Origin: Macrostomum lignano
Lineage: Eukaryota
Assembly: GCA_002269645.1 (NCBI GenBank)
Contig: NIVC01000322.1
Coordinates: forward strand, 124,001-188,000
Length of the DNA stretch: 64,000 bases
Direction: 5' to 3'
Below, piece by piece: positions 13,661 through 39,531 of the stretch. Position 1 is the first letter of the stretch. Every line of letters starts with the position of its first letter. Made by a program: the position numbers and the translations under genes. Below the pieces are notes generated by a model. It was not told the origin of the DNA. It did no database searches and worked only from the letters and a program-made list of their open reading frames with translations.

Positions 13661-13744
13661 CACCAGACAATAAGTAGCTAGTGCGACAATTTCTTTAGCA
13701 TTATAGCGGCTCCTTTAAAATTCACTTACTTTTACATTTGAAAT

Positions 13745-19050: not shown

Positions 19051-19784
19051 CTTTTTAAAAAGTCTTTTAGTTTTCCTGACGTTGAAAAGCTTTAATTAAA
19101 AAATTATACTCTATGAAAATTCGAACCATCGTCGCTGCATTTAACAGTTCAGTTTGTTCACCTCTAGGCTAGCTCTCATCGTTTTGATAACATCAAATTT
19201 TGCACTTATATAATTCAACACTTTAAAATCCAAGCATAGAGTAAATCACACGAAGCAGTTATGACATAATCAGTTTCTCAGTCAGTCAGTATCAGTTAAC
19301 AATATGGTTACGCAATCTAAATCAAGTCTGGTGCTACGCTTCCACACTGCATTTTCAATTCAAGTCGGAGTTACAATTCAGTTATGATGCAATCTATTTC
19401 AGAATCAGAATTCAACCAGTCAGTTTTTTCTCTAGCATTCTTACAATGCATTTCAAGTCGAAAAGTTTGCTTGACCTTTGCAAAAAAGCATGTTTTTCGA
19501 ATATTTAATGCCTTTAGCATCAAGAAATTTCTTAGCCACGATGCATGTACAGTCACGGGAAAATTTCTGATCGAACAGTGCAAGTTCGAACAAAATCGGT
19601 ACAGCCATTTTTTCTCTAATCGATCACATAGACACAGACAGACCATTTTTAGTATATAGGATTTTGGATACTTACCCACGGTTATTTACGGTCACTTTGA
19701 TAACCTTATAAATATAACTCTGTTATTAAATCCCTCCATCTAGGCTTCATCTTGTCTGGTGGTGCCTGCAGTTTTCCAGTAGAA

Positions 19785-20525
19785 TCAGTTAAAAGGCGAC
19801 AGGCACTCGCACAGAACATTGGAAACATAAATAGATGTGTCGCTGTTATCCGTGAGACCCATTAAATCGAGATGTTTTGCAATAGCATTTTCTCCGCCAC
19901 CATTGTTTTTCGGCTGGCCACTGGCCCAGAAGCTGCCAACGGCGGTGTTGCAGCCGATCCAGTACCAACCGCCAGCGGGCTCCGCACTGCCTGCTGGCTG
20001 GAGGCCTCCGAGCCAGAATCTCGAATTACTATTGTAGGTAAAAATCCAGTCCACGTGGCTCAGTTCCTCAGCGCTGGTCACGTCGGCCATGATGACCAGA
20101 CCGCTCTCTGACTCGCACTTCTGCCTGCTCGGCCACCACGTCCCGATGCCAGAGTACAGTCTGTACTTCACTCCGCACAGGTCCATGCCGTAGCCAGACG
20201 GACACAGCGCGCCCGGCTCGAGTCCCGGCCGCTGCTTGACAAACACCCGGCCTCTCCTGGAGCAGCCGCAGCTCCTCACCGACTTGCTGCACTTGTCGAA
20301 CACGAACAGCTGGCACGGACCGTCAGCCAGGCTGAACGCCTGACAGCGCAGCTTCTCGGAGCACAGAGCGGCGCACCCAACATTGCTGAGTTCGTTTGAG
20401 TAGGTCTCAACAAACTCATCGTTGATGCAGAGGCTGCCGTCAATGAGGGTGTACACCTGTTGGCTTGCAGTGGTGAGGCTGAGGACAAGACTCATCCAGG
20501 CCACAATATTTAATACGCTGGTCAT
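19785..20525 (-). CDS. PAN/Apple + C-type lectin secreted protein, copy 3 (intact, 246 aa)
   Basis: MTSVLNIVAWMSLVLSLTTA signal-like N-terminus; PAN-like CAALCSEKLRCQAFSL..CQL; C-type lectin domain with CPSGY..C, W..SRQKC, WLGG, WYW, FWA.GQP, VLCE. No introns. ATG chosen by alignment to sister copies. Confidence 0.88.
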   Translation of the reverse strand: MTSVLNIVAWMSLVLSLTTASQQVYTLIDGSLCINDEFVETYSNELSNVGCAALCSEKLRCQAFSLADGPCQLFVFDKCSKSVRSCGCSRRGRVFVKQRPGLEPGALCPSGYGMDLCGVKYRLYSGIGTWWPSRQKCESESGLVIMADVTSAEELSHVDWIFTYNSNSRFWLGGLQPAGSAEPAGGWYWIGCNTAVGSFWASGQPKNNGGGENAIAKHLDLMGLTDNSDTSIYVSNVLCECLSPFN

Positions 20526-21006
20526 TTTTGCTTGTAGGCTGGTGTGTTTTCTAAATTTGTCAAAGAAATAACGAAAGACGATGCAGATCGCTTCTAACAT
20601 AAAAATTTCCAACAACAAGCCGATTATATTTGTTTTTTTTCTGACCAATCGTGTGCTAGCTTTTTGGGAAACTTTCATTGGTAGAAAAATGAACTTCCAG
20701 AGGTGAATGCCGAGCCATGTCTACTGTGTCCTTGCCTGGCAACCACGGGCAGTGATGCCGCGCAGGGAGATCCGGTGGTGCCGGTGTCCGCAGCGGGGTG
20801 CCCCTTCGGAGAGTCCGGGAGTTGGATGGCCGCTCGCCCGGTATCCTAAAAGTAGCGGATGAGCTGGCAGAGATTCTCGGGGCTCTCGGGCCTGTAAATG
20901 TCAAAAAAGGTCTGGGTTTGGGCCCGAGGTAGGTGAGCCTGTCCTGAGTAAAGGCGGAGCATCCACAGATGAGGTGCTCCGCATTTTCGACCCCGGAGAT
21001 GCAGAA

Positions 21007-22441
21007 TGTGTGAAGTTATGAACCGAGTACGCAAACGAGACTAGTATTTAGAAATTGTAAGTAGAAAAACACACACAAACTCTTAAGCGCGGTGTCGCAG
21101 TATTTATTAAATTGAACTCACTGAGTCAGCATAAATTACTAGATTAAGATTAGGGTGGGTACTGGGCAACAAAGAGAGAGAAAGTGAATAAGATAACTCC
21201 AGCCCACGACGCTGGGGTGGCAAGGGTGCACTTTAACTAAAGCTATAAAATAAATAATAAACAAATAATAATATTATTACTGAGTGAACTATTAAGTGGT
21301 TAATGCCATACGTATAACTAAGCTATCTGACATCTCCCCCCTAAAGTTCGAAACATTCCCCAGCAAAGTTCGTTCGAAGTCAGAGTCAGTTCAAATTCAG
21401 GATAAAAGTTGCAGGCGTTCAGGTGGCTGCCTCCGACGCTGCGGGTAGCGCCTCGCCGGACTGCTCGGCCGGTCAGCGGCGGCGGTGGCCGCGCCATCCT
21501 GCGGCGCGTCATTGCCGCCGTCGCCTTCGCTTGGCTCGGTGGGCGGCGAATGCGTTTCATCGGAGACACCGGCCGGTGGCAACGGGTTGGCCTCCGGCAG
21601 CGAGCTCATCAGCAGTTGGTCCGTGTGCCGCCGATGGAGAGCGCCGCCGACCTCAATGTCGCAATTGCGGGATCAAGCGGACACGACGCTGCCCTCCGCC
21701 CAGCGGGTGCCGCCGCCAGCCTTTGCCTCGCGCAGTAGAACTCGGTCGCCGACTTGAAACTCGCGTGCATGCGGCTGCTGCTCGACTTGCCGCTCTTGAC
21801 GCTGCTGCATGCTGTTCGTCAGCGATGGCATCAGCAGGTCCAGCCGACTGCGCAGTCTGCGGCGGATGAGCAGCTGGCTGAGAGACTCGCCGGTGATCGA
21901 GTGCGGTGTGTTGCGGTAGGACAGCAGCATCCGCTGCAGTGCCGCCGTTGAGTGCCCGCTCTTGAGCAGATGTCGCTTGAGCACCTGAACGAATCTCTCC
22001 GCTTGGCCGTTCGTTGCCGGATGGAACGGCGCCGAGAAAACATGCCGAATGCCGTTGCGCCTTGTGAACTCGCCGAACTCCGCGGAGGTGAACTGCGGGC
22101 CGTTGTCGGAGACCAACACCCTGGGAATGCCCAGTCTGGCGAAGATCTCGCAGAGTCGCTCGATGGTGGCAGCAGACGTAACGCAGTGCACCTGATGAAC
22201 CTCTGGCCACTTACTGAATGACCAGGTACGTGCGACCGTTAACGAGGCCGATGAAATCCAGGTGCAGCCTCGCTCAAGGTTCAGCATGAAACGGCCAAGG
22301 TTGCACCGGCGCTTTGGGCCGGTCGGCCTGGTTCAGCATGCAGGTCCGGCACGACTTGACGGTGTTCGCGTCGCTAACAGATAATAATAATCTAACTGAG
22401 TGAACTGGCCAGTGCCATACGTATAACTAAGCTATCTGACA
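21007..22441 (-). mobile_element. Internally deleted Ty3/gypsy LTR retrotransposon remnant
   Basis: Integrase core SKWPEV..LGIP..LVSDNGPQFTS..HPATNGQAERFVQ (ORF 21673-22287). Polypurine tract (plus strand tctccccccc at ~21331) abuts an LTR at ~21007-21330. The LTR start is repeated at ~22395-22441. Confidence 0.8.
21409..22287 (-). pseudogene. Ty3/gypsy integrase fragment (frameshifted)
   Basis: SDNGPQF (D,D35E core), TPHSITGESLSQLLI.RRLRSRLDL and FQVGDRVLLR motifs. Confidence 0.9.
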
Positions 22442-24119
22442 TAGCTTAGATATGTCAGAAATCACAGATAGCTCTGATAACAAAGATGAGATGCTCTGCA
22501 TTCTCGACACAGGAGATGCAGATTAGGCATTCCTCATTTTCCCTTAGAGGTAGCGTTCCTTAGCGAAGCATCCATGACCTGAGAGGGCCATTGCTTCCGG
22601 GCCTTGATCTCCCTGCCGTTGAGTCCAAGCAGGGCCCTGCGGAGAACGGGAGAGGGACAGGGGACGACCCGCATAGGCACTGCTATTGTAACATAATCAT
22701 GGAGAGGGCAGTGCCCCCTATCACAATCTTAATGATCCGTCATCTGAGAGGGTCAATGAGCTGACAATTATTGTCACAGACACTCATTTTAGCGCCACAG
22801 ACACTTATTTTAGCGTCACAGACACTCGTTTTAGCGCCATAGGCACTCATTTTTGCACGCTAAAGTAAATTCAGAGTTCAATTTTGAGTTGAAAAGTTCT
22901 TCCACTGGGAGTTGCCTTGCTGATGGGGGTAACGAAGACTTGATGCTCAGCTGTTGAACTGACAGAACAATACAAGCGTTTGCTTGCAATTGTTCAACTT
23001 TTGACCGCATCTTGAGCGGCTTTGACAGTCAGGCCTTGAAGCTTTTCTATTTATGGCTTCATCATTCTGAAGACTTACAAGCATTTAAAGCATCAATCAT
23101 CAGGTCAACAGCAGCATGCTTGAACCAGCCCATCACTGCAGCCAATGATTTAGCCTATAAAACTCAACACCAGGCAGTCCTGACAGATTGAACTCTTAGA
23201 GTGAAATTGAGATGGATAATTTGAGAAGCTAGTAGTTTATAGATATGATAGAATAATACAGGTCGAAAGTACAAAACTTCCGTGACCTCCTTAAACTCAA
23301 GCATGCAGTGACTTCACTGTCAACACCCACAAGTTTTATCTGACGCTCTTTACCACAAGCTTAGAGAAAAAATGCTATCGTTGAACTGTATCATTTGGCA
23401 TTCGCAAGCATTTTAATTGGAGAGGGTGTCTTGGTGGGCGCCTCTGTCTCTTGATAGGTTGGTGGGCGCCCCTGTTGGTGGGCGCCGTTGCTCAAATTCC
23501 CTCCGTAAGCGTTGACATGTCAGCAAATCGATCCCCCGAGCAAAGATAGAAAGCCTTCCCCAGATCGCAAGCAGCCCCTCCCCCAAAAAATGCAAGCATC
23601 CCCCAGAGAACAAGCATTCCCCTGATAGTATAAATACCCCCAGATACCAAGCATCTCCCCTATAGCAAGCATCCCTAGATAGCAAGAACCACCCTCCCAG
23701 AAAGCAATCTAGTACAACAATTTCCTGAGCTAGCCAGTGCAAAAATCATTTACTCAGGTGCTAGTAGTGCAATTCTCTGTTAGACATCGAATGCAAAATT
23801 TTTCTCATCTAAGTGCGATAATCCTTTTGTCATCTAGTGCAATAATCGTTTTCTCGTGTATTGCATTAATCACTTCTTCAGCCAGTGCAGTATTCCATGT
23901 CTAATTAGCTAGAGATGAATAATTTAACCTATTTTTGACATTTTATGCATTACTATTTACTTTTAGTAAAAAAGAACTACAACGATTCGATCTTGTGCTC
24001 CTCATTATCATAAAAATCATTGGAAATCTATAATCCTACTTAGCAGTCTCTACAGCAACTTTTTAATGTTCTTATATACAGTGCAATGAATGTTGGTATA
24101 TTTATTATGCACTACTCAA

Positions 24120-24216
24120 AATAGTACAGAGTAGCGCATGAGAAACTACAAAAATCGCAAGTCCACAGCCGGTACGTCTAGCCTAGCGGGGGCCCACGGT
24201 GGATCCACTGGCTAGC
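24120..24216 (+). mobile_element. Putative Helitron-like 3' terminus (GC-rich hairpin followed by CTAG)
   Basis: gtccacagccggtacgtctagcctagcgggggcccacggtggatccactggctag. Related copies at ~6320-6390, ~33720-33815 and ~43180-43275. Confidence 0.4.
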
Positions 24217-24632
24217 CAGGGATGTCAAGTTGCAGGGCCAGCCGTGCGTTGAGTCCGACGCACAAACTCAAGTCAGGACTGGGGTCTGAGAACCTCGACA
24301 GTGGCGTCTCAGTGGCCATCGACATGACAGCTTCATGACATCGATATGGAGCGTTGGCCAGGGCCTGCGGCTACATCTGTGAAGAACGCGGTTGCGACGC
24401 CCAAGACCCGAAAAGAAGAACTGCAGCATGTGGACCGAAAAAACAATAACGGGACAGGTAGTCCATTTTAAGAAATCAAACAAAAAATATAGCCTGCTTA
24501 TTATCCTGTTTTCAATACATATTAAAAACGAAACCTCTGTCTGTGTGTATGGCTGTACATGGATTGCTATGGACTCCCAAACCGCACAATCAAATGACAC
24601 CAAATTTTGCACCCATCGTAAACTCATTACAG

Positions 24633-24991
24633 GGGGGCCGTAGCCGAGCGGTAGCGCAGCTGCTCTGGTGTGCCAGCGACCCAGGCTCGATTCCAAGTGC
24701 AGTCACATTATTTTGGGGCTGAATTGGAATCTTGGCTTGGCTCTGCTCGTGCAATTAACGGCCTTGAGAGCCAACCCCCCAAGGCGCAGTGAAGTGTACA
24801 TGCCTAACGATTAATATAAAGTTAGGGCCGCTGTACACTCCTGTGTGAGTGTGTGCCTGCGTACGTATCCGCGCGCTTGTATGCCTGCTCAGGGGAGTCG
24901 GCGGAATGGGCAGTAATGCCTCTCGCCGGTTGTGTGCCTATGTCGCTTAAAGTGCGCCAGGGTGCACACAACCCCCCTGCCTCTAATAAAA
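24633..24991 (+). mobile_element. tRNA-derived SINE with AATAAA/A-tail and 13-bp TSD
   Basis: TSD aaactcattacag at 24620-24632 and 24992-25004. The empty site is visible in the paralog at ~43681. Head ggggccgtagccgagcggtag..ggctcgattcc. Confidence 0.85.
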
Positions 24992-25079
24992 AAACTCATT
25001 ACAGAGAAGGCTTTAGGTTACCTTAGAATCTCCTAATTTCAACTCTTCCTACTTAAAAGTGCAAAAGACTGCTAGCAAA

Positions 25080-25953
25080 ACGCGATTTTTTAAACTTAAT
25101 CCTCCATAGCGTTGCTCCACTTGCCCTTCACAGAAGCAGTATTTAACGAGGCATTGCTGCGCATTGAGGACAAAATTTTAGAACTGGCAGATCGTCCCTT
25201 GAAAATTTTTGGACTTCCAGTACCTGGAAAAACATCAACAAGAGAATTTGAGTAGGAAGATGCTGCGAGAAACTAGCTTTGACCGCGAGCAGCTTCGTCA
25301 GTTCATTGAGGAAAATGAACCCCGTCTACTACCTGAGCAGGCAGAGGCGTACCAAGAATTAATACAAAGAGTGAATGACAATGTAGGAGGAATACTTTTC
25401 CTAGATGCTCCAGGGGGCGACAGAAGAAACTTTTCTGATTAACCTCCTTCTGTCAAAGGTTAGACACGGAGGCGATATTGCAGTTGCTGTCGCTTCCTCT
25501 GGAATCGCAGCCATGCTACTTCAAGGTGGTTGCACTGCTCACTCAGAACTAAAATTGCCACTTGATCTGTCAAGAGTTGAAAAACCACCTGTGCAACATC
25601 AAGAAGAACAGTGGCAAGCCTGCAAGCTTATTGTCTGGGATGAGTGTACCATGTCCCACAAACTGGCTTTCGAAGCACTTAACCTGACGCTAAAGGATCT
25701 GCGCAGCAACAACCAGCTCATGGATGGTGTCACCTTGCTGCTCTATGGAGACTTTAGACAGACGTTGCTTGTAATTCCGCGCGGCACCCCAGCCCAAGAT
25801 GAGATCAATGATTGCCTCAAATCTTCTCATCTGTGGCCATCAGTTGAAAAGCTGCACTTGCGAACCAACGTCAAGGCTGCAGTTTATGGCGATGAAACGG
25901 CTCATCAATTTTCTATTAATCTCTTGGAGGTCTGTCCTGTTGTGAATTTGTAA
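25080..25953 (+). pseudogene. Helitron RepHel PIF1-type helicase fragment (frameshifted)
   Basis: LFLDAPGG (Walker A region), AVAVASSGIAA.LL.GG.TAHS, LIVWDECTM, GDFRQTL motifs. Confidence 0.9.
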
Positions 25954-26661
25954 CTCAATGTACTTGCCCATACGGTAGCTCTCTCTCTCCCTCTGCCAAC
26001 CCTCCCCGCCCTTCCATGCTAACAACTTATTGTGAGCTATTTTCATAAAGTACTTACTTAATTTTGGGTACCACTGCACTAGACCTAATCAATAGATGAA
26101 TTATTATTGTAGTTGTTTAGCCTTTGTCTGCGATTTTCTCACCCCTGATTATTATTATCCCTCCCCCTCCGTGCCCTCTCATTGGCTGTCACTGTTATCT
26201 GCAATTCTTGTTTTCTATACCCACAGTCGCGTTCTGTGTGGCTGCAGCAAATCCCCGCTCGCTCTCTCTGCCCACCCCGCCTTTTCTCTTACCCTGCAGC
26301 TTTTGCCCCACCCCATGTTGTACTGACATTGATTTGATCGGTTTCTCCTCTGGCTCCTTCGCCGCTCCGACCATAACCAATAAAAACAATATACAATCGT
26401 GCTAGCAATCGTATCCAAACATAGACGCTTTGAGCACCGAGTGAGCAACCTACGCTCCAGTAAGTATCATTCTGCTTTTGTTATTTGGGGCTCTAGCTCC
26501 ATTAGGTCATCGTCACCAGGGCCTGTGCGTTCGCTGCGACCCTGGTTGCCGGCCTTCTGCCCGCGCGTTTGTGCGACAGTGGGTTGGCAAGCAGCAGGAC
26601 TGGGGCTGAGTCTCCCTGCTCGTACAGAGCGCGAGACGAAGCTGGCTGGTCCGTCTCGGGA

Positions 26662-26880
26662 CACAACAGTCCCGAGGATGGGCTGTCACCAATTGCTGCA
26701 TTCGGTACAATCGTATCTTCTGTGCAGGAGCTCTCAGAGTACAGAGTAGCGCATGGGAAAACACAAAAAATCGCAAGTCCACAGCCAGACCGGAAACAGG
26801 TGGCCGGAATCAACTTGGGGTCATCCCGTTTCTCTCACATGGCCAACTTTATGTTGCATGCTCACGCGTTGAAATCTACA
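26662..26880 (+). pseudogene. Scrambled Helitron helicase pieces
   Basis: Contains gaggatgggctgtcacc (also at 34153) and a ..FSHGQLYVACSRV-encoding segment, joined to the Helitron-end-like sequence. Confidence 0.65.
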
Positions 26881-26899
26881 GCTAGCCTTTTCCTCTTTG

Positions 26900-28320
26900 C
26901 TCCCCGGGGGGGGATTTGGTGTATCTTCAAGCACTGTCATAAGCATCTGTGAAAGTCATTACAACTGGACTATATTCAGACTGCATGGACTGTAATATAG
27001 AAATTTTTCTAAGTCCAAGTTTTTTACGAGCTACATTTATCAGAAATACGAAGTTCCCTACTTTAATACGAGTAAATTTCTTGGTTACTAAGTTTTCAAA
27101 CGTTCTTGACACAAGGGACCAACCCCAGAACACGAAACTCAAAGACATTGGTTGAACTATTTGTTGCGAACCTTCTGAAGCAAGCATCAAGTAACCTTCC
27201 CTCCAGACCAGAATAGAAATTTGGCTTTGATTTGCTAAGAAATTGGCAACTTCAATACTAAATATCATTTTATCACTCCTCACACATGTTCCCTATCCAA
27301 TTTTGCATTGTCTAGCATATTTACTCTGCTTAGCTTCTCTATAGTACTTAGACACTATTGTTAATTTTTCCGATTTCTCGATGTTAGGAGTCTCATATTC
27401 TATTCTACGAGCTATTCTAGAAGTATACTTTTTAAAGCGAGTTTTCTCCAAGTTTTGTTTAAGTCTATTAACAAGTTCTTGTTTGAGTATGATTTTAGAT
27501 TCGAGAATGTATGCAAAAATAGTTCCGGGGATCGGAATTCTGCGGGTTTCAACGGCTTATAGACTTATAATGAAGAAAAGCCAAGGAGGCAAGAGAGGCA
27601 AGGCTGGAGAAAACTTAAGCATGCACAAATAATGAGGCAGCCAAGACAATGGAATCCAGCAAACATGTAGGGACCTCCAGTGGAATGCAGCAACGTAGGA
27701 AAAATTTACAGTAGCCATTAACCATTTCAAAGTTAATTGAAGTTCACCGGCGAGGCGGCTGACAGGGGAAGGTGGCTGCAGCCGGAGAATATTTGATGAG
27801 CCCAGCATGGGGGCCACTCTTGTGGAGGAGACCGACGGCCAACCCCGAGGAACGTAGCAACCGAGGGATGGACGCGCGGACAAGAGGGCAGTGAAAGACT
27901 TCCCCCAAATACTCTAACTCAACCAGAGTAAATTGATGAGTCTAACCGCCTCACCCTCGCCCCCTCCCCGTAGCAACTCGCGTGTTAAATGCTAATCCTA
28001 TTGCAAGCGCTGTTTGTGAAAAACTTGCCGTCGCTAACCACGCGACATCCAACTCAAACCATCAACGGCAGGGGATGAAATTGGGGGTATTTTTGAGAAT
28101 AGACGGGAGCTCAGCCCTAGGGGCACTTCTTTCTTCCTCGCTTTTAACGAGCTTAATTCACAAACTGAAGTCCCATGCTCTATTTGAGTTAACGACAAAG
28201 ATGAGACAAGGAATTAAGAATATAAAAAACCGCCATCTCGGTTGTAAGCTCTCAAGAACACAGCAGAATCCACTAGAACTAGAAGATGGCATAACATTAG
28301 AAAAATAGAGTCTTGCATGA
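26900..28320 (-). mobile_element. Degraded non-LTR retrotransposon fragment, probably L1/Tx1-like ORF2 C-terminus
   Basis: Long mostly open minus-strand frame ending WREGYL..MSLSFVFWGWSLV..FLINVARKK, resembling the degraded zinc-finger region of L1/Tx1. Duplicated at ~45480-46885. Confidence 0.4.
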
Positions 28321-29381
28321 GCGATTCCCCCTATGAGTCCATTTCAGTAATTACCCATGAGCCTTGAATCTCAACAATTACCCATAATAAGCCTCATAAA
28401 TTCCCGCCCGAGCCTTGACAGCAAAACAATTTACCCTGTGAGTCTCATGACATCTTAGCAATTTACAATGAGTCATTTATGTTGGACAGGGTGAAGTCAA
28501 GTCTCAGTTGCAATGCAGTCTTGTTCGAATGTAATTTGTTGTTCGAGTTGTTAATTTTTCGATAATTAAAATTAGATGCACTCATACATTCATTTGAGCA
28601 ATCTTTGACCCGCGAAGCCACTTGGTGGGGTAATGCGAACCGGCCTTACACGGATAGCTTCTCAGAAATGATCCATCATCGAGTACATAGTGTTGCTTGG
28701 CGTTGTAAAAAAACTCCAAATTACGAAAGAATAATTACAAGTAGCTTTTGATGCAAACTGTTTGTGCATCAGACCATTACTGAGCTGAGGTCAACTATAT
28801 TTAAGAAGATCAAACAGATTTTAAATTAAAAACTGACTGCAGTTTCGTTTATGGCAGAGGTTTGTTTAAAAATTGAAGTAGAAGCTTGTCTCATGAACAA
28901 GCTGCAGCATCAAGTTAATAGCTGGATTTTTAATTGTGGCTTCACGCTCGACAAGTGCCGAGGAAAACTGTATTGAATGCACGGTACTGGGGTTTTGTGC
29001 TTTTACATAAGTACATGTATGTATGAGCAAGGTAGTATCTAGTGCGTCGTAATAAAATTCGTTAATAACTATAAAAAAATTGATTTGATAAAACCAACAG
29101 ACAGAGATCCACAGACACTACAATGGAGCCCTTTTAAACATCTGCCTTCCGGCAGCTATTGATTATTATTCGGCCCTTATATTAGAGTATTTTGAATACA
29201 TTGCGTAAGGTTTGTTAATAATTTAAAAAAATCTGTGCACTGTAAGCAGACGGGATGCTTGAATTATGACATGCGGTTATATAAAAAAATTTGGACGTTT
29301 ACACACAGTTGTGACGATCACTTTTGATTAAATCTGTCCATCCGGTTCCATTTACTTGGCGGTGCCTGCAGTGTCTCAGAA

Positions 29382-30128
29382 TCAGTTAAAAGGCGACAGG
29401 CACTCGCACAGAACATTCGGAACAGCACCGTATGTGTCGCTACTATCCGTGAGACCCATTTTATTGACTTGTCTTGCGATTACATTTTCTCCGCCACCGT
29501 TGTTATTCGGCTGGCCAGTGGCCCAAAAAGCGGGATCAACGTTGATGTTGCAGCCGACCCAGTACCAGCCGCCCAGAGGCTCCGCACTGCCTGCTGGCTG
29601 GAAGCCTCCGAGCCAGAAGTTCGAATTACTATTGTTGGTGAAGATCCAGTTCACGTGGCTCATCTCCTGCTCGCTGGTCACGTCGGCCATGATGACCAGA
29701 CCGCTCTCTGACTCGCACTTCTGCCTGCTTAGCCACCAGGTCCCGATGCCAGAGTACAGTCTGTACTTCACTCCGCACAGGTCCATGCCGTAGCCAGACG
29801 GACACAGCGCGCCCGCCTCGAGTCCCGGCCGCTGCTTGACGAACACTCGGCCTCTCCTGGAGCAGCCGCAGCTCCTCACCGACTTGCTGCACTTGTCGAA
29901 CACGAACAGCTGGCACGGACCGTCAGCCAGGCTAAACGCCTGACAGCGCAGCTTCTCGGAGCACAGAGAGGCGCAGCCAACATTGCTGACTTCGTTTGGG
30001 TAGGACTGAACAAACTCATCGTTGATGCAGAGGCTGCCGTCAATGAGGGTGTACACCTGCTGACTGGCGGTGGTGAGGCTAATTAGGACAAGAGTCATCA
30101 AAGCCACAATGTTCGATACGCTGACCAT
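29382..30128 (-). CDS. PAN/Apple + C-type lectin secreted protein, copy 4 (intact, 248 aa)
   Basis: MVSVSNIVALMTLVLISLTTA..CASLCSEKLRCQ..WLGGFQP..QPNN..VLCECLSPFN*; 747 nt, open. Confidence 0.88.
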   Translation of the reverse strand: MVSVSNIVALMTLVLISLTTASQQVYTLIDGSLCINDEFVQSYPNEVSNVGCASLCSEKLRCQAFSLADGPCQLFVFDKCSKSVRSCGCSRRGRVFVKQRPGLEAGALCPSGYGMDLCGVKYRLYSGIGTWWLSRQKCESESGLVIMADVTSEQEMSHVNWIFTNNSNSNFWLGGFQPAGSAEPLGGWYWVGCNINVDPAFWATGQPNNNGGGENVIARQVNKMGLTDSSDTYGAVPNVLCECLSPFN

Positions 30129-31239
30129 TTTTGCTCGTAACTGTTGGGTAAGCTTTTGGGTTTTGAAGTGTGTCAAAGTAAATTACGAGAGACGATGCAA
30201 ATCGCTTTTAGCATAAAAATTTCCATTTACTAACCGATAATATTTGCTTTTTCCTGACCAATCGTGTGCTACCTTTTCGGGAAATTTTTCATTGGTGGAA
30301 ATGAAAAAGAAAATGAGGTGAGTGTCACACCATGTTGACTGTGCCTTGGCCCTGGCAACCACGGGCACCGATGCCGCGCAGGGAGATCCGGTGGTGCCGG
30401 TGTCCGCAGCGGTGTGCCTCTCTGGAGAGTCCTGCAGGTGAATGGTCGCTCGCCCGGTAGCCCTAAGGTATCGAGGCCGAGCTGGCAGATATTTTCGGGT
30501 CTGAAAACGTCAAAGAACGTCCGGGTTTGTGCCCGAGGTAGGCGGGGCATTCACAGATGAAGTGCTGCACATTCTTGACACTGGAGATGCAGAATGGGCA
30601 TCCTTACTGCAGATTTTCCCATGGAGGTAGCGTTTTTTAGCAAAGCACCCATGACCTGATAGGGCCATTGCTACCGGGCCTTGGTGTCCCTGCCGTTGAG
30701 TCCTAGCAGGGTCCTACGGAACGGGAGAGGGACAGGGGATTGCAACAAAGACTCCCCCAGTGGGAGCCAGAGAAAGAAATATTTTAGCTCCAGAGTGCCC
30801 CAGACGAGACCTTACCAAACGAAAATTAAATTCTTTTCTGGGTTCTTTTGACCACTTTGACCTCCCCGATATGGGTCCCCCATTTCAGTTGAGCCTTGAC
30901 ATCTTAGCAATTCCCCCAGCCTTAACATCTCATGTTATATGTGCGCTATATGAACTATTGCGTATAAGACGCACGTTAAATTTCATCAATTCATTATGTG
31001 CTAGAATTGAGAGCTCTTAATGAGCCGCCACTAAAAGAAAGAGAAAGAACAAGCCACTGCTGCAGGATAAAAAAGAAAGTACGTTGGTAACTCGCTACAA
31101 TTAAACAATCACATACTTCGACTTTAATGTCGTTAATCTAGAAGAGTCCATCGAAACGGAAATAATAGTCATAGAAGATGCAGAAGACAAAACATCTCAA
31201 GAATTCCCTCAGAGATATTTGAAATCTCAGCAATTCGAT

Positions 31240-31562
31240 CCCCCAATAGCAAGCACCCCCAGATAGCAAGCATCCCCAGATAGCAAGCACCCCCAGATAG
31301 CAATCATCCACCAGATAGCAAGTACCCACCAGATAGCAAGTACCCACCAGATAGCAAGCAATCCCCCAGATAGCAAGCACCCCCAGATAGCAAGCACCCC
31401 CCCCCCAGATAGCAAGCACCCCACCCCAGATAGCAAGCACCCCACCCCAGATAGCAAGCACCCCACCCCAGATAGCAAGCACCCCACCCCAGATAGCAAG
31501 CACCCCACCCCAGATAGCAAGCACCCCCTAGATAGTAAACACCCTCCAGATAGCAAGCACCC
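31240..31562. repeat. CCCCAGATAGCAAGCA minisatellite (17-21-bp variants)
   Basis: Direct tandem repetition. Confidence 0.95.
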
Positions 31563-31762
31563 TAGCACCTAAGCGTTGCTTGTGCAATAATCCTTTTCTT
31601 AGCTAATGATAATGAATTTAACTTATTTTATTTTATGACATTTTATGCTCTACTATTTTAATATTCGTAAAAATACGTCATAACAATAAGATATTTTGCT
31701 CCTGATTTTCCTAAAAGTCATTTTTTGCCTATCTATAATCCTACTTAGCGATCGGAATAATC

Positions 31763-33639
31763 GGGAGTACGAGATCTGCTAGCAGGAAATCTGCTAGCCG
31801 AAGTTTGCTAGCGAGAAATTTGCTTGCCGAAATCTGCTAGCCGAAGTTTGCTAGCCGAAATCTGCTAACCGAAGTTTGCTAGCCGAAATCTGCTAGCCGA
31901 AATCTGCTAGACGAAATCTGCTAGCCGAAGTTTGCTAGCCGAAATCCGCTAGCCGAAATCTGCTAGCCGAAGTTTGCTAGCCGAAGTTTGCTAGCCGAAA
32001 TCCGCTAGCCGAAATATGCTAGCCGAAATCTGCTAGCCGAAATATGCTAGCCGAAATCTGCTAGCCATAATATGCTAGCCGAAATATGCTAGCCGAAATC
32101 TGCTAGCCGAAATATGCTAGCCGAAATATGCTAGCCGAAATCTGCTAGCCGAAATGTGCTAGCCGAAATCTGCTAGCCGAAGTTTGCTAGCCGAAGTTTG
32201 CTAGCCGAAATATGCTAGCCGAAATATGCTAGCCGAAATCTGCTAGCCGAAATCTGCTAGCCGAAATATGCTAGCCGAAATGTGCTAGCCGAAATCTGCT
32301 AGCCGAAATGTGCTAGCCGAAATATGCTAGCCGAAATCTGCTAGCCGAAATCTGCTAGCCGAAATATGCTAGCCGAAGTTTGCTAGCCGAAATCTGCTAG
32401 CCGAAATCTGCTAGCCGAAATCTGCTAGCCGAAATCTGCTAGCCGAAATATGCTAGCCGAAGTTTGCTAGCCGAAATCTGCTAGCCGAAATCTGCTAGCC
32501 GAAGTTTGCTAGCCGAAATCTGCTAGCAGGAAATTTGCTAGCTGCCTTGCTCTCGTAGCTGTTGCATGTTATTTGCTGTGTTTTGATTCCGATTTGAGCT
32601 GCTTTGATTCGTACGAGTAAATATATAACTTATATACCATATACTGCCACTACCAGCCATTAAGACTGAAAGTTGTGTGTATAGATAAGTTTAAATTTAA
32701 CTACCTGAACTACAGCTGCCTGAGCTACCTGAACTACGGCCTTACAGCTGATAATGCTAAAACATTATCAAATGTCTAAGAGTAAAATAGGACAAAAAAT
32801 ATAAATGATTTTGACGATTTCCAAGTGCAGTTTTAGCATATACAGTACTTTAGCATACAGTAACACACATGTTGGTGTACAGTATCTATAGCTAGATACA
32901 TGTATGTCCAAGGTACAATTTACTATAGCTATATGTATTGTTAATGTATAGATATTTTCCATCGCTTACGGCACTGTGTACAAGCAAAAACTCTATGCAG
33001 GTGTGGCCCACAAGCTCTTACCCTGTGATCATGGATGTAAAATATTTTCTTTATTCAATAGCTTGTATATGAACTTTTCAATCCACCTACGTTAAAACCT
33101 AAATGTTTTCTTTTTGTTTATGGCATCATCTACTGATTGCGTTTTAACACGTACATGTACGAGAACCCACGGCGAAGGCTAGGCGGCAGATTAAGTCGTC
33201 CAGATTGGACAATAAAAAATGTCTCTAGCAAATTACAACTTCGTAAATTGCTGTTCGCCGGTTTTGGTTAGATTATCGCTAGCAGATTTCGGCTAGCAAA
33301 ATCCTCGCTTGCAAAATTCCTGCTAGCAAACTTCGGCTAGCAGATTTCGGCTAGCATTTTTCGGCTAGCAGATTTCGGCTAGCGGATTTCGGCTAGCAAA
33401 CTTCGGCTAGCAAATTTCGTCTAGCAGATTTCGGCTAGCAGATTTCGGCTAGCACATTTCGGCTAGCAAACTTCGGCTAGCAGATTTCGGCAAGCAAATT
33501 TCTGGCTAGCAAACTTCGGCTAGCAGATTTCGGCTAGCACATTTCGGCTAGCAAACTTCGGCTAGCAGATTTCGGCAAGCAAATTTCTCGCTAGCAAACT
33601 TCGGCTAGCAGATTTCCTGCTAGCAAATTTCATAGACCC
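31763..33639. mobile_element. Foldback-type nonautonomous DNA transposon with arms of 14-bp GCTAGCCGAAAT(C/A)T repeats and 8-bp TSD
   Basis: GAATAATC flanks both ends (31755-31762 and 33640-33647). Termini GGG..CCC. The right arm is the reverse complement of the left (gctagcaggaaatctgctagccgaagtttgctagcgagaaatttgcttgccg). Confidence 0.85.
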
Positions 33640-34089
33640 GAATAATCTCCACCAGTAAATTTTTATATTAGCATACTCAGGACAATGAATGTTGGTATAT
33701 TTATTATGTACTACTCAAGAAAGTACAGAGTAGCGCATGGGAAAATACAAAAATTGCAAGTCCACAGCCAGTACGACTAGCCTAGCGGCGGTCCACGGTG
33801 GATCCACTTGGCTAAGCTCAGAATGTCAAGTTGCGGGGCCAGACGTGCGTTCAGACGGGACTGAGGACCTCAACAGTGACGTCTCAATGGCCTTCGACAT
33901 GACAGCATCATGATATCGATATGGCCTGCAGCTACATCTGTGACGTACGCGGTTGCGGCACCCAAGATCCGAAAAGGAGGACTGAAGCATGAGGGGCGAA
34001 CAAAACTTATCTCGTATGCCATAACGAAACGAGACGAGACGGATCGTCCCTTGAACATGTTTGGACGTCCAACAGCCGCAAAGAATCAA

Positions 34090-34825
34090 CAAGAGAGCCG
34101 TGGTGATGAAACGGCTCATCGATTTTCTATCAATCTCTTGGAGGTCAGTACCGAGGATGGGCTGTCACCAATTGCTGCATTCGGTACAATCGCATCTTCG
34201 ATGCAGGAGCTCAAGGCTACTAAGTTTACCTGAACCTGTCGCACAGATTTTCTGACATTGACTGGCTGTCAGAGAGAGCCATTTTGAGTCCCAGGAATGA
34301 CGCAGCTAATAGTATCAACTCCCAGCTGCTCAATGAGCTGCCTGGCAATATCATCAGCTACAAGTCAATTGACACAGCAATGACTGGTGACAATGCTGTA
34401 GAGTTTCCTATGTATTGAGCTCTTAAGCTCTCTAGAGCCTCCTGGAACGCCAACGCACAACCTGCAGTTAAAAGTGGGTGCACCAGTAATGCTACTGCAC
34501 ATTTTAAATGACCCACACCTGTGTAAAACGGCACCAGAGGCTAATCGTCAAGCAACTCTTTCTGAATTTGATTGAGGCAAAATTTGGGACAGGATCCGGC
34601 AAAGGGCAATCTGTGTTTATTCCCAGAATTCCAATTATACCATCGGACCCGCCTTTTCAATCGAAGCGAGTACAGTTTCCAGTGAAGGTCTGCTTTTCCA
34701 TGATCATCAACAAAGCCCAAGGACAGTCGCTAAAGTTGGCCGGAATCAACTCAGTCACCCTGCTTCTCACATGGGCCAACTTTATGTTGCATGCTCACGC
34801 GTCGAAACTGCAGCTGGCCTCTTAA
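34090..34825 (+). pseudogene. Helitron helicase C-terminal fragment
   Basis: LQLKVGAPVMLL, RLIVKQL..NLIEA, VFIPRIPIIPSD.PFQ.KRVQFPVKVCFSM.INKAQGQSL. Confidence 0.9.
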
Positions 34826-35000
34826 TCCTTGCTCCCAGGGCAAAATTCCTTGTTCTAGTTTCTACAATACAACCAGGAATTTGATTTATCCTCAAGAACT
34901 GCCTAGACTTATAGACTTAGAGACTTATTGTAGACTTATAATGAGGCAAAGCCAAGGGAAGTAAGTGAGGCAAGGCTGGGGAAAACTGAAACAGGCATAA

Positions 35001-35634
35001 GAGACCTACTTAAGCGCACTGAACAAAGTCAGATGCGCCGCTCTGTGCGCCCAGAACCAGCGCTGTCATGCTTCAGAGTATACTGTATACATGCTTCAAG
35101 CAGCTGTTCGTGTTCGACAAGTGCAGCAAGTCGGTGAGGAGCTGCGGCTGCTCCAGGAGAGGCCGGGTGTTTGTCAAGCAGCGGCCGGGACTCGAGGCGG
35201 GCGCGCTGTGTCCGTCTGGCTACGGCATGGACCTGTGCGGAGTGAAGTACAGGCTGTACTCTGGCATCGGGACGTGGTGGCCGAGCAGACAGAAGTGCGA
35301 GTCAGAGAGCGGTCTGGTCATCATGGCCGACGTGACCAGCGAGCAGGAGATGAGCCACGTGGACTCCATCTACTCGAACTACAGCTCTGGTCAATCGATC
35401 TGGCTCGGAGGCTTCCAGCCAGCAGGCAGTGCGGAGCCGGCTGGCGGCTGGTACTGGGTCGGCTGCAACATCAACGTTGATCCCGCTTTTTGGGCCACTG
35501 GCCAGCCGAATAACAACGGTGGCGGAGAAAATGTAATCGCGAGACAAGTCAATAAAATGGGTCTCACGGATAACAGCGACACATTTATTTATGTTTCCAA
35601 TGTTCTGTGCGAGTGCCTGTCGCCTTTTAACTGA
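35001..35634 (+). pseudogene. PAN-lectin copy 5, plus strand, 5'-truncated and frameshifted
   Basis: ETYLSALNKVRCAALCAQNQRCH from 35001, then a foreign segment replaces AFSLADGPC and shifts the frame. Resumes QLFVFDKC..VLCECLSPFN*. No signal peptide. Confidence 0.88.
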
Positions 35635-36453
35635 CTCTGGGAAACTGCAGGCACCGCAAGACAGGGAACCGGATGGAGAGATTTAATCACAAAATTATAT
35701 TACTGAAGCTATCAAAGTGACCGTCAATAACCGTGTGAAGGTGTCCAAAATTGATTATATAACTACATGTAATAATTCAAACATCCCGTCTGCTTACAGT
35801 ACACATATTTTTTATAAATTTCTCAATGAAAACTGACGCAATGTATTCAGAAAAATTGCAATAGAAGGGCCGAATAATAATCAATAACTGCTGGAACAGA
35901 GATGTTTAAAAGAGCTCCATTGTAAGTGTGTCTGTGGATCTCTGTCTGTTGGTTTTATCAAATCAAGTTTTTTTGGAATTTGCAGCTTGTTCATTAGCCA
36001 AGCTTTTACTTCGATTTTTAAGCAAGCCTTCTCTGCAATAAACGAAACTGCAGTTTGTTTTTTATTTAAAATCTGTTTGAGCTACTTAAATATAGTTGGC
36101 CTCAGTTATACTCGGAAGCATAAACAGTTTTCATCGAAAGTTACTTGTCATCATTCTTTCGTAGTTTGGAGTTTTTCTACAACGCCAAGCAACATAATTT
36201 ACTCGATGGATCATTTCTGAGAAGCGATCCGTGCTAAGGCCGGTTCGCATCACCGCCAAGTGGCTTCGCGAGTCAAAGATTGCTCAAATCAATGTATGAG
36301 TGCATCTAATTTTCCTAGATAAATTTGTTAAAAAGAATTCGCACAGCACATTACATACGATTGAATGTCCTCTACAAAACTTGTAAAAATATCTGTTCCC
36401 TATACTAAAAACGGGTTGTCTGTCGATAGGCATGTGATTGATTTCAGAATGAA

Positions 36454-37000
36454 ACTAGCAATCTAGTACCCCCCTTTGGGGTGCCAAATAAACAAGGAAC
36501 AAAAATTAATCCATCACAAAGCCCATTTTCCTAAGGATCAAGTTTTTCTTCAGTTTTGTAAATCATCTCATTCGAGTAAAATTGTTACGGACAAAGATAT
36601 TTGCTATGAATCTCTTGTTTTCTTAAAGTAACAACATGGCAACAAAATAAAGCCTTCACAAAGATAACAGGCATTCCCCCTGAATAGACAGCATTCCCAA
36701 GACAGCAAGCAACCCCCGAGATAGCAAGCATCCCCCAGATAGCAAGCATCGCCCAGATAGCAAGCATCCACCACACAGCAAGTACATGTAGCTAGTGCAG
36801 CTATTTCCTCTGCTAAAGCAATAATAGCTTTCTCAGGTAGTGCAATAGTCTCAGCTAGTTGCAATAGTCGTTTTTTCAGCCAGTGGAAAAAGCTCTTTTC
36901 ACATCTTGTGCAATAATCATTTACTCATCAAGATTTCTCTCATCAAGTGAATTAATCCTCGCCTCAGCTATAGTGCAATAAAGAATCCCCTTGTCGACTA
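36454..37000 (+). mobile_element. Head of a Helentron/DINE-1-like element with CCCCAGATAGCAAGCA remnant
   Basis: actagcaatctagtaccccctttgggg matches the heads at 13267 and 16601. It abuts a reverse-oriented tail at ~36385-36453. Confidence 0.5.
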
Positions 37001-37021
37001 TAAAAAGGCTCATGCTTGGGG

Positions 37022-37342
37022 AATCGCTATAGCCCAGTGCTCTAGCGCGGCTCTCATGTGCCAGCGGCCCAGGCTCGATTTCAAGTGCAATCACATTAGC
37101 GTGGGGCTAAATTGGAATCTCGGCTGGGGTCTGCTCCCCTTCCCAAGGCACAGTGAAGTGTTTCCTCACAGTGAAGTTAGGGCCGTTGCACACTCCTGTG
37201 TGAGTGTGTGCCCGTGTTTATGACTGCGTACGTATCCGCGCGCTTGTGTGCCTGCTCAGGGGAGTCTGCGGAATGGGCAGTAATGCCGACAATGTCGCTT
37301 AAAATGCACCAGGGTGCACACAGTCCTTGCTTCTAATAAAAG
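37022..37342 (+). mobile_element. tRNA-derived SINE, same family as 24633-24991
   Basis: Shares ccaggctcgatt..aagtgca.tcacatta..ggggct.aattggaatc, gttagggccg..cacactcctgtgtgagtgtg and ..ggtgcacaca..ctaataaaa. Confidence 0.8.
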
Positions 37343-38784
37343 ATGGGTTGCAAAACTTTTTATTGATAAAGCGATTTACTCGCACTAAATGACAAGGATC
37401 TTTAAAACTGCTTAGTGATTATACAATATTAGAGATAAAAATGACATTCTTGGTAGCTCAAAGCAGCTTCATAGCTTTATAGCTTGCGATAGCTGTACCA
37501 AGAAGAAATAATTCGCCTTTTCTACCTTGAAAAACGTGTGAAAAATTCCTGCAAAATCTTCGCAAATGAAATCACACTATTGCCATAAGCATGCAAACTT
37601 CGCAGGGCTTTCTAGAATTTAGAAAAGTCATTTTACAGAAGACGCATATCCAATATTAATTTTTTTATTCTCCACTGTTTGTCAATTTCCACACTCTAAA
37701 TTTACTTACTGGAAACTGATCTGGATACTGGAGTTGGTACCATTTTTTTTACAAATTTTTAGATAAATCTTTGCAACTTCCGTTAGAATCAGGTTCCATA
37801 TCCAAACCTAGGTTAGGCGAAATATTATTTGAGCAAAATTCAGACCCGGTTGTAAAACTCAAATAAGCAAGCTACATGTTGCAGCAACTTTACTTGTGAG
37901 AATTGGCATCCGGCACCGGGTTGGTGCGACATGCAAACATTGGTCTTGGCAACTGCAAAGCAAACTCTGATATTTAACACCGATCCAGACGGGGCTGACT
38001 AAAAATTTTCCTGCTTTGTTTTGTACAGGACATTCAATCGAATGTAATGTGTTGTGCGAATTCTTTTCAACAAATTTATTCAGGAAAATTAGATGCATTG
38101 ATTTGAGCAATCTTTGACTCGCGAAGCCACTTGGCGCGGCGGTGATGCGAACCGGCCTTAGCACGGATCACTTCTCAGAAATGATCCATGAGAAGAGTAA
38201 ATGAGTCAGAAATGAGTAAATTATGTTGCTTTGCGTTGTAGAAAAACTCCAAACTACGAAAGAATGATGACAAGTAACTTTCGATGAAAACTGTTTATGC
38301 TTCAGAGTATAACTGAGGCCGACTATTTTTAAGTAGCTCAAACAGATTTTAAATAAAAAACAAACTGCAGTTTCGTTTATTGCAGAGAAGGTTTGCTTAA
38401 AAATCGAAGTAAAAGCTTGGCTAATGAACAAGCTGCGAATTTCAAAAAACTTGATTTGATAAAACCAACAGACAGAGATCCACAGACACACTTACAATGG
38501 AGCTCTTTTAAACATCTCTGTTCCAGCAGTTATTGATTATTATTCGGCCCTTCTATTGCAATTTTTCTGACTACATTGCGTCAGTTTCCATTGAGAAATT
38601 TATAAAAAATCTGTGTACTATACGCAGACCGGATGTTTGAATTATTACATGTAGTTATATAATCAATTTTGGACACCTTCACACGGTTATTGACGGTCAC
38701 TTTGATAGCTTCAGAAATATAATTTTGTGATTAAATCTGTCCATCCGGTTCCTCTTGTCTGGCGGTGCCTGCAGTTTCCCATAA

Positions 38785-39531
38785 TCAGTTAAAAGGCGAC
38801 CGGCACTCGCACAGAACATTAGAAACAGCACCATTCGTGCCGCCAATATCCGTTAGATCCATGAAATTCAGGGATTTTACAATCGAATTTTCTCCGCCAC
38901 CGTTGTTATTCGGCTGGCCAGTGGCCCAAAAAGCGGGATCAACGTTGATGTTGCAGCCGACCCAGTACCAGCCGCCAGCCGGCTCCGCACTGCCTTCTGG
39001 CTGGCGGCCTCCGAGCCAGATCGATTGTCCAGAGCTGTAGTTCGAGTAGATGGAGTTCACGTGGTTCATCTCCTGCTCGCTGGTCACGTCGGCCATGATG
39101 ACCAGACCGCTCTCTGACTCGCACTTCTGTCTGCTCGGCCACCACGTCCCGATGCCAGAGTACAGCCTGTACTTCACTCCGCACAGGTCCATGCTGTAGC
39201 CAGACGGACACAGCGCGCCCGCCTCGAGTCCCGGCCGCTGCTTGACGAACACCCGGCCTCTCCTGGAGCAGCCGCAGCTCCTCACCGACTTGCTGCACTT
39301 ATCGAACACAAACAGCTGGCACGGACCGTCAGCCAGGCTGAACGCCTGACAGCGCTGGTTTTGGGCGCACAGAGCGGCGCACCCGACTTTGTTAAGTTCG
39401 CTTGAGTAGGTCTCAACAAACTCGCCGTTGATGCAGAGGCTGCCGTCAATGAGGGTGTACACCTGTTGGCTGGCAGTGGCGAGGCCGAGCGCAAGACTCA
39501 TCCACGCCACAATGTTCGATAGGTTGGTCAT
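38785..39531 (-). CDS. PAN/Apple + C-type lectin secreted protein, copy 6 (intact, 248 aa)
   Basis: MTNLSNIVAWMSLALGLATA..CAALCAQNQRCQ..WLGGRQP..QPNN..VLCECRSPFN*; open. Confidence 0.88.
   Translation of the reverse strand: MTNLSNIVAWMSLALGLATASQQVYTLIDGSLCINGEFVETYSSELNKVGCAALCAQNQRCQAFSLADGPCQLFVFDKCSKSVRSCGCSRRGRVFVKQRPGLEAGALCPSGYSMDLCGVKYRLYSGIGTWWPSRQKCESESGLVIMADVTSEQEMNHVNSIYSNYSSGQSIWLGGRQPEGSAEPAGGWYWVGCNINVDPAFWATGQPNNNGGGENSIVKSLNFMDLTDIGGTNGAVSNVLCECRSPFN

Follow-up and report, generated by a model that had tools for sequence, protein, structure and literature searches.

A cluster of nine copies of an intronless gene

A 64,000-nucleotide (nt) stretch of the Macrostomum lignano contig NIVC01000322.1 (assembly GCA_002269645.1, positions 124,001 to 188,000 of the forward strand), referred to here as the window, contains a cluster of related genes without introns. 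Each full gene encodes ~248 amino acids (aa) comprising a signal peptide, a PAN/apple-like domain and a divergent C-type lectin-like domain (CTLD). The copies share a near-identical core, carry two variable blocks (HV1 and HV2) downstream of it, and are mosaics of one another in a manner that probably reflects gene conversion in the germline. The window was searched by tblastn with one copy as query, and the state of each copy was judged from three-frame translations. Nine family copies were recovered (c1 to c9), three of them intact (c3, c4 and c6) and six broken. The number and numbering match those of an earlier note on this DNA, and the span on which that note centred, 19785-39531, holds c3 to c6, with c1, c2, c7, c8 and c9 lying outside it. 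The copies are as follows.

c1, 4592-5332, minus strand: pseudogene of full length, interrupted by an in-frame TAG (5159-5161), with QPD as its EPN-equivalent motif
c2, 9097-9260, minus strand: fragment in which an internal deletion (junction 9186/9187) has joined the start of the core to HV2 and the tail
c3, 19785-20525, minus strand: intact, 247 aa
c4, 29382-30128, minus strand: intact, 248 aa
c5, 35068-35634, plus strand: 5′-truncated, with homology from ~35000 and without a signal peptide
c6, 38785-39531, minus strand: intact, 248 aa
c7, 39715-40137, minus strand: 3′-truncated; ends within the core, following VFVKQR, and at this point (39840) is joined to the 5′ flank of c6
c8, 47943-48685, minus strand: pseudogene with a 1-bp deletion (48488/48489) within a cluster of private substitutions
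c9, 59204-59500, minus strand: frameshifted fragment with the C-terminal part only

The intact copies all begin with a hydrophobic signal-like peptide. Besides the gene, the ~1.5-kb duplicated unit takes in 5′ flank (~420 bp) and 3′ flank (320 bp). Local duplication, truncation and pseudogenisation drive both the growth and the decay of the cluster.

Several local features of the copies were also recorded. With their 3′ flanks, c5 and c6 form an inverted pair (35001-36380, plus strand, and 38018-39414, minus strand; 91% identity) ~1.6 kb apart, and the region of c9 (58375-59498) is a third member of the c5/c6 subgroup, at 88.6-91% identity. The junction between c7 and c6 (39837-39842) is the trace of a deletion or an unequal exchange, one end of which lay in the core. 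In c8, six private substitutions and the 1-bp deletion fall within ~12-20 nt (48481-48492) that immediately precede the core; this private cluster is matched by no copy in the window and may represent a donor elsewhere or a complex mutation.

A narrow family with a PAN-like and a lectin-like domain

The closest relatives of the encoded proteins are other M. lignano proteins, at 48-56% identity. Protein searches returned only eight relatives (37-56% identity), all from M. lignano or two Logan contigs, and a profile search for further homologues gained four proteins, each of them from M. lignano or a Logan contig. Look-ups of the c4 protein and of P0001 by exact sequence gave no match. Narrow and lineage-restricted, the family has so far been seen only in Macrostomum-type flatworms. 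A further M. lignano locus (L002) carries two members 3-4 kb apart, at 6211-6962 and 10235-11231, the first of which is uncalled, intronless and frameshifted and the second of which (P0006) has an intron. The family is thus clustered and decaying at this locus as well.

Pfam searches with the intact copies gave no match at E ≤ 0.01 and only sub-threshold PAN and Lectin_C matches at E ≤ 10. Among seven family members, Lectin_C was matched in two, with a best E of 0.0034 that is under the cut-off, and the best values for PAN_4 (E = 0.01) and PAN_3 (E = 0.2) were also under their cut-offs. A family profile compared with the PDB recovered solved CTLDs at E = 7.6e-6 to 3e-3, led by mosGCTL-1 (7.6e-6) and codakine (3.3e-5), and its N-terminal part recovered PAN domains, namely those of microneme protein 5 (1hky, E = 7.5e-4) and MIC4 (E = 0.044).

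An AlphaFold2 (AF2) model of the full-length protein, built from seven sequences, was discarded, as its predicted local distance difference test score (pLDDT) was 43 and only residues 41-70 reached 70-85. The CTLD alone (c4 residues 105-248, 12 sequences) was modelled with a pLDDT of 80.8 and a predicted template modelling score (pTM) of 0.79. When this model was used to search the PDB with Foldseek, the top 50 matches were all CTLDs (probability 1.0, template modelling scores of 0.59-0.76). The modelled domain shows the CTLD fold, with two helices, two sheets and a long loop region.

Among the conserved CTLD features, the WIGL-like motif is present as WLGG, and the cysteines C1 (QKCES) and C4 (VLCEC) are retained. 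The long-loop pair C2-C3 (EDC ... WND..C) is absent from all copies in the window and present in the M. lignano proteins P0006 and P0007. In canonical C-type lectins, the EPN position determines sugar preference. This position reads QPN in c4, c5, c6, c8 and c9, QPD in c1 and QPK in c3, and lies in the following segments.

c1, 4693-4775, minus strand: segment with the EPN-position motif
c3, 19889-19968, minus strand: segment with the EPN-position motif
c4, 29486-29568, minus strand: segment with the EPN-position motif

The EPN-equivalent motif is followed by G-E-N (GDN in c1). At the WND position every copy reads LTD, such that Thr replaces the Asn ligand in the hidden Markov model alignment to mosGCTL-1. 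The canonical Ca2+/sugar site, which requires EPN or QPD together with the Glu and the Asn-Asp of WND, is thus incomplete, and with WND read as LTD sugar binding is not assured. The proteins may bind glycans or other ligands.

A near-identical core

The core extends over ~240-270 nt, from CQLFVF to GIGTWW and on to ADVTS, and occupies the positions below.

c4, 29678-29915, minus strand: core, 96-98% nt identity, GC content 0.63, third-position GC (GC3) 0.86
c1, 4885-5122: equivalent of the c4 core
c3, 20078-20315: equivalent of the c4 core
c5, 35098-35335: equivalent of the c4 core
c6, 39084-39321: equivalent of the c4 core
c8, 48239-48476: equivalent of the c4 core
c2, 9187-9229: partial core
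c7, 39840-39927: partial core

Six copies span the core, and in each of their 15 pairings its nt identity is 96.2-98.3%, compared with 81-95% for the N-terminal part and 73-96% for the C-terminal part. Near-identity that includes synonymous sites, as originally proposed for the core, is thereby borne out. Its placement in the lectin domain needs correction, since the core is not contained in the CTLD: it runs from the C-terminal half of the PAN-like domain through the linker into the CTLD, of which it includes the first third (β1 through α1). In a sliding window over an extended alignment, identity is 78-86% in the non-coding flanks, similar in the variable coding parts apart from two dips (to 68% and 78%), and 96-98% in the core. 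As the flanks diverge like the variable coding parts, the core, and not the flanks, is the outlier.

The same pattern is evident at synonymous sites. Synonymous divergence (dS) is 0.02-0.14 in the core and 0.11-0.51 in the C-terminal part, and among codons whose amino acid is invariant across copies, synonymous variation occurs at 8/73 in the core versus 14/45 in the C-terminal part (Fisher p = 0.008). Between distant members of the family these sites are not fixed: the proportion of synonymous differences (pS) of the core reaches 0.51 in comparison with the homologue L001 and 0.34 with the L002 paralogue of M. lignano, and 19 of 52 and 14 of 56 identical core residues, respectively, use different codons. 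Core synonymous sites are therefore free between distant members, and there is no nucleotide-level constraint across lineages. GC3 is 0.86-0.87 in the core and 0.59-0.74 in the flanks, and is not raised in the core of the homologues L001 and L003 (0.68-0.70). The pseudogenes c1, c2, c5, c7 and c8 carry the same core, which is expected from conversion and not from selection on each copy. Taken together, the results point to a core that was homogenised by exchange with GC bias, on top of protein constraint.

Two variable blocks

The two variable blocks are located as follows.

HV1 in c4, 29606-29677, minus strand
HV1 in c5, 35336-35410
HV1 in c6, 39009-39083
HV1 in c8, 48167-48238
HV2 in c4, 29417-29485, minus strand
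HV2 in c3, 19820-19888
HV2 in c5, 35531-35599
HV2 in c6, 38820-38888
HV2 in c8, 47978-48046

For HV1 there are two main versions, IFTN.. and IYSNYSSGQS.., separated by 19-28 differences over 75 nt and a 3-nt indel. HV2 has three or more versions, with independent reassortment of the two halves of the block. The motif versions (IFTN/IYSN, EPAGG/EPLGG, ENVIARQVNKM and DIGGT/NSDT/SSDT) and their distribution over the copies are exactly those listed in the earlier note. That note also assigned the variable segments to ligand-binding loops, an assignment that holds in part. In the AF2 model, HV2 maps to the β3-turn-β4 hairpin around LTD (the WND position) and to the β4-β5 loop, and so adjoins the canonical positions; HV1 maps to helix α2 and the loop before WLGG, and the QPN-bearing long loop belongs to the less variable parts.

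Along the gene, dS is 0.37-0.49 in the signal peptide, 0.16-0.24 in the N-terminal PAN part and 0.07-0.10 in the core, and then 0.8-1.2 in HV1, 0.21-0.26 in the stretch from WLGG to EPxGG, 0.14 in the middle, 0.5-0.6 in HV2 and 0-0.08 in the tail. We looked for positive selection by Nei-Gojobori counts per segment; simple counts were used in place of site models because recombination invalidates the latter and the sample is tiny. The ratio of nonsynonymous to synonymous divergence (dN/dS) was 0.1-0.7 everywhere, with 0.26-0.27 in HV1 and 0.61-0.65 in HV2, and exceeded 1 in no segment; the term hypervariable, if taken to mean positive selection, is therefore not supported. Because the variable blocks are equally variable at synonymous sites, they look like old lineages that have been kept and shuffled, not like products of fast amino-acid change.

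Mosaic copies and recombination tests

The clearest mosaic is c5, in which five blocks from four lineages follow one another.

c5 35336-35410: 3/75 differences to c6; 19-26 to c1, c3, c4 and c8
c5 35411-35435: 0/25 differences to c4
c5 35436-35447: 0/12 differences to c1 and c6; 4/12 to c4, c8 and c9
c5 35448-35573: 2/126 differences to c4 and c8; 18-27 to c1, c3 and c6
c5 35574-35599: 1/26 differences to c3; 8-11 to the rest

The other copies show comparable changes of affinity. In c3, the HV2b block (19820-19846) differs from c5 at 1 of 27 nt and from the others at 10-12 of 27. From its 5′ part through HV1, c4 is c1-like (13/213, 4/238 and 5/72 differences), and from 29568 downstream it is c8/c5-like (2/126 differences). 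An 83-nt block of c6 (38889-38971) is identical to c4 and c5, with neighbouring blocks that are 25-38% different from c4. The 5′ part of c8 is c6-like (21/210 differences), its HV1 c1-like (2/88) and the following part c4-like (3/208), and c9 combines a c6-type HV1 with a c4/c8-type EPLGG and a private HV2a. The exchanged tracts are short, ~12-130 nt, and the blocks are sharp at the nt level, with 0-3 differences to one copy versus 9-28 to the others. The clearest mosaics, c5, c8 and c9, are all among the six pseudogenes and fragments.

Trees built by segment conflict with one another at 97-100% bootstrap. In the N-terminal part, c1 groups with c4 and c6 with c8 (99.9% each); in HV1, c1 groups with c8 (97-99%) and c5, c6 and c9 form one group (99.9%); in HV2a, c4, c5 and c8 are united (100%); and in HV2b, c3 pairs with c5 (100%) and c4 with c8 (99.8%). 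The pairwise homoplasy index (PHI) was 0.25 against a permuted value of 0.46 ± 0.02 (p = 2e-4), ~11 standard deviations under the permuted mean, and 46-54% of informative site pairs were incompatible, with a Hudson-Kaplan minimum number of recombination events (Rm) of at least 11-16. PHI remained significant for third codon positions alone (p = 0.005 and 2e-4) and when the set was reduced to c1 and the three intact copies (p = 0.002). GENECONV-like scoring of runs of concordant polymorphic sites gave p ≤ 5e-4 in many pairs, and triplet tests reached p ≤ 5e-5 for c5, c8 and c4. Recombination is thus strongly supported, with a significant signal that selection on amino acids does not explain, and the proposal that no single tree fits the copies is confirmed. 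Convergence cannot produce blocks of 4-26 linked differences that include synonymous ones and an indel, and the data support the view that the mosaics are real and arose from exchange between copies.

The recent duplicates c4 and c8

The copies c4 and c8 lie in a segmental duplication of ~11-12 kb, which includes a divergent patch.

23776-34623: segment that carries c4
42836-54818: twin segment that carries c8
29569-30368, minus strand: divergent patch between c4 and c8, with ~1% divergence in the 3.8-kb flank on either side

Outside the gene the twin segments are ~1% diverged and are broken up by changes in satellite length. Within the patch, 72 of 500 positions mismatch (14%) over 30368-29869, where c4 carries c1 states and c8 carries c5/c6 states, and 15 of 200 mismatch (7.5%) over 29768-29569, where c8 carries c1 states. 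The core differs by 3% between c4 and c8, above the divergence of the flanks. A divergent patch within duplicates that are otherwise ~1% apart means that one or both copies were overwritten after the duplication, and the patch is, as judged from its sequence, a putative post-duplication conversion tract, or several. Together with the chain of blocks in c5, the PHI result, the concordant runs and the triplet tests, it supports exchange in short tracts, as originally suggested. The twin segments could alternatively be two haplotypes placed in tandem.

Interpretation and alternatives

We consider the probable cause of these patterns to be interlocus (ectopic) gene conversion in the germline, within a family whose copies are both gained and lost. 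Under this model, the copies, pseudogenes included, would trade short tracts through such conversion, and some recombination would be unequal or illegitimate, for example at the c7/c6 junction. Exchange and purifying selection would together keep the central 240-270 nt, which encode the most conserved part of the protein, near-identical, and exchange may have driven core GC3 to 0.86, as is predicted for conversion with a GC bias. HV1 and HV2 would each survive in a few old and highly divergent versions that are moved between copies as blocks, giving rise to the mosaics. Conversion, and not double crossover, would then be the mechanism of the exchanges; the identical core may act as a homology anchor from which tracts extend into the variable blocks; and selection may keep the different HV versions.

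Several observations weigh against this model. The age, direction and rate of the events, as well as the correctness of the assembly, have one assembly as their sole basis. Donors of the c4/c8 patch are ambiguous, and the best in the window are still 6-10% different, indicating that the real donors lie elsewhere or that the events are older than they appear. The dS values of HV1 and HV2 each derive from just 13-15 synonymous sites, and the HV1 alignment contains an indel. With dN/dS below 1 throughout, there is no direct evidence that selection maintains the versions. Further, the synonymous excess of the core is modest, as the comparison of core (8/73) with N-terminal part (7/36) is not significant (p = 0.25), and across species no other part of the protein is as conserved as the core block, such that part of its invariance is protein conservation.

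Four other explanations, and an extension of one of them, have to be set against conversion. An assembly or polishing artefact, in which reads from paralogues were joined or polished across the near-identical core and c4 and c8 are haplotypes placed in tandem, is unlikely. The core (240-270 nt, 96-98% identity) and the ~99% identical 11-kb twins are where assemblers and polishers switch copies, and there is a single assembled sequence. Yet the window contains no N, and satellite arrays of 2.3 kb were traversed, which suggests long reads. Moreover, several switches occur between blocks that share at most 12 identical bases, outside long identity, so a read-level chimera is improbable; examples are the 12-nt and 26-nt blocks in c5 and, in c8, the change from c1-type to c4-type that falls between columns 590 and 592-602 of the alignment. 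Reads would not mis-map between swapped blocks that are 25-38% different, and even if c4 and c8 are alleles, their patch still represents exchange with other copies. Little probability also attaches to the idea that all chimeras stem from unequal crossing-over of misaligned tandem copies, without non-reciprocal conversion. Changes in copy number, the junction of the c7 core with the c6 5′ flank at 39840, the 11-kb duplication and the inverted c5/c6 pair all fit such a process, and one crossover in the core accounts for two-part chimeras split between the N-terminal and C-terminal parts. It fails to explain internal blocks of 12-130 nt that are bounded on both sides by another lineage (c5, the 83-nt block of c6 and HV1 of c8), each of which would require two closely spaced crossovers, nor a c4/c8 patch that is internal to a collinear duplication with both flanks intact.

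Programmed or somatic diversification, in which pseudogene cassettes are copied into expressed genes with the invariant core as anchor, has been proposed for snail FREPs and has a parallel in chicken immunoglobulin genes. The arrangement in the window is formally compatible with it, as intact genes are surrounded by broken copies with alternative cassettes; the invariant anchor adjoins the variable blocks, the tracts are short and minisatellites lie beside most copies. We nonetheless regard it as highly improbable. All that is seen is fixed in one germline assembly and matches the products of ordinary evolutionary conversion, the pseudogenes are themselves mosaic and hence recipients as well as possible donors, just three genes are intact, and the window contains no dedicated enzyme or signal sequence, its other open reading frames (ORFs) being only mobile-element fragments. 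It is very unlikely, too, that the broken copies form a reservoir of HV1/HV2 cassettes copied into the three expressed genes, at a high germline rate or somatically; in that scheme the anchors of homology would be the GC-rich core together with the conserved middle and tail segments, and the cluster would be a lectin counterpart of pseudogene conversion in chicken immunoglobulin genes.

The least probable account dispenses with exchange: a second function at the DNA or RNA level would hold the core, and repeated, convergent or targeted mutation would produce the variable blocks. In c3 and c4 an alternative reading frame crosses the core without a stop, and the first 30 nt of the core are identical at 29/30 positions to a distant M. 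lignano paralogue. The same frame is closed in c6 (by a stop), in L001 (four stops) and in L003 (one stop), and an overlapping frame in the core was accordingly rejected. Rfam and tRNA searches found no family and no tRNA anywhere in the window, and a structured-RNA or tRNA-derived element was likewise rejected. The core pS of 0.34-0.51 between distant members, with 14-19 identical residues encoded by other codons, is also at odds with this account, as are the blocks of linked differences with their synonymous changes and indel and the PHI signal on third positions. We therefore reject it, as far as sequence can refute it, and retain germline conversion as the preferred explanation.

Repeats and other elements of the window

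The gene copies lie among satellite arrays and mobile-element fragments. Arrays of an 18-21-bp unit (AGATAGCAAGCAYCCCC) are found 0.5-1.1 kb upstream of c1, c4, c7 and c8, at a greater distance from c3, and in the interval that separates c5 from c6. The arrays seem to be part of the duplicated unit, and their lengths differ between the twin copies. A 375-bp repeat (24631-24996) is 92.8% identical to the M. lignano contig NIVC01001023.1 (L002, 3666-4036) and has a weaker copy at 37013-37322. The elements are listed below.

5852-5949, 13416-13667, 23544-23709, 31240-31562 and 36662-36785: AGATAGCAAGCAYCCCC arrays
41099-41528, 42475-42763, 49831-50359 and 52028-52142: further AGATAGCAAGCAYCCCC arrays
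9599-11963, 13753-16016 and 17702-19052: satellite arrays of a 23-bp unit, up to 2.4 kb
31770-32542 with 33278-33631, and 52362-52825 with 53564-53917: arrays of a 14-bp unit, in inverted pairs ~0.7 kb apart, in both twins
21673-22287, minus strand: retroelement integrase core (rve, E = 1.4e-10), just upstream of c3
25209-25953 and 43897-44337, plus strand: fragments of PIF1-like helicases (E = 2.5e-39 and 4.9e-19), one in each twin segment
613-1047, minus strand: ORF with a match to GWT1 (E = 1.4e-15), probably a host-gene exon

Comparison with known systems

The cluster is a compact example of how a lineage-specific family of secreted lectin-like proteins evolves in a free-living flatworm. 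Within a single 750-bp gene, a homogenised framework is combined with shuffled old cassettes, and pseudogenes join the exchange. As a consequence, segment-by-segment analysis is needed if family trees, orthology calls and dN/dS scans are not to mislead. Should the proteins act in immunity or reproduction, the cluster would be a convenient model for whether cassette versions are maintained by selection. Searches of the literature on Macrostomum and on conversion in C-type lectins turned up no account of this family or of such mosaics in flatworms. The cluster is a clear but ordinary case, which adds a taxon and a domain architecture to the known phenomenon of conversion, not a new mechanism; it would become notable only if the exchange proved programmed or somatic.

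As CTLDs, the proteins resemble the closest solved structures (mosGCTL-1, codakine, mannose receptor CRD4, langerin and CEL-I) in fold, in WLGG and QPN/QPD, in the Glu-Asn after the EPN-position motif and in the Asp at the WND position. They depart from these in having only ~20-24% identity, a Lectin_C score below threshold, no C2-C3 pair, a lost WND Asn and an N-terminal PAN-like fusion.

The earlier note had likened the diversity to that of FREPs or Sp185/333 and seen in it a combinatorial repertoire. With only three intact copies, the functional repertoire visible in the window is small, and to neither family was a sequence or domain relationship found. FREPs of Biomphalaria are a secreted, lectin-type invertebrate family with proposed conversion-like mosaics, for which the special claim is somatic diversification. 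They are built from IgSF and fibrinogen domains, both absent here, and the likeness is one of analogy only. For Sp185/333 (SpTransformer) of the purple sea urchin, a published account describes small clustered genes with flanking short tandem repeats, segmental duplications and mosaic members (PMC5103432). The flatworm cluster is similar in architecture only, with its 18-21-bp arrays beside most copies and its 11-kb duplication carrying c4 and c8. Homology to Sp185/333 was not found, as protein searches gave only Macrostomum-type CTLD proteins, and the genes are single-ORF PAN plus CTLD genes, not two-exon genes. Sp185/333 diversity has been described chiefly as the presence or absence of elements within one exon, whereas the blocks found here are alternative versions at the same positions.

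The nearest parallels are the gene families known to be shaped by interlocus gene conversion, such as MHC class I and II, KIR, the CTLD-type Ly49/NKG2 and plant NLR clusters. As in those clusters, clustered paralogues and pseudogenes occur together, short non-reciprocal tracts and conflicting segment trees are seen, the framework is homogenised, a few old motif versions are shuffled, and the converted segment is raised in GC. The cluster described here differs from them in its free-living flatworm host, its pairing of a PAN-like domain with a CTLD, its small number of intact genes and a dN/dS that nowhere exceeds 1.

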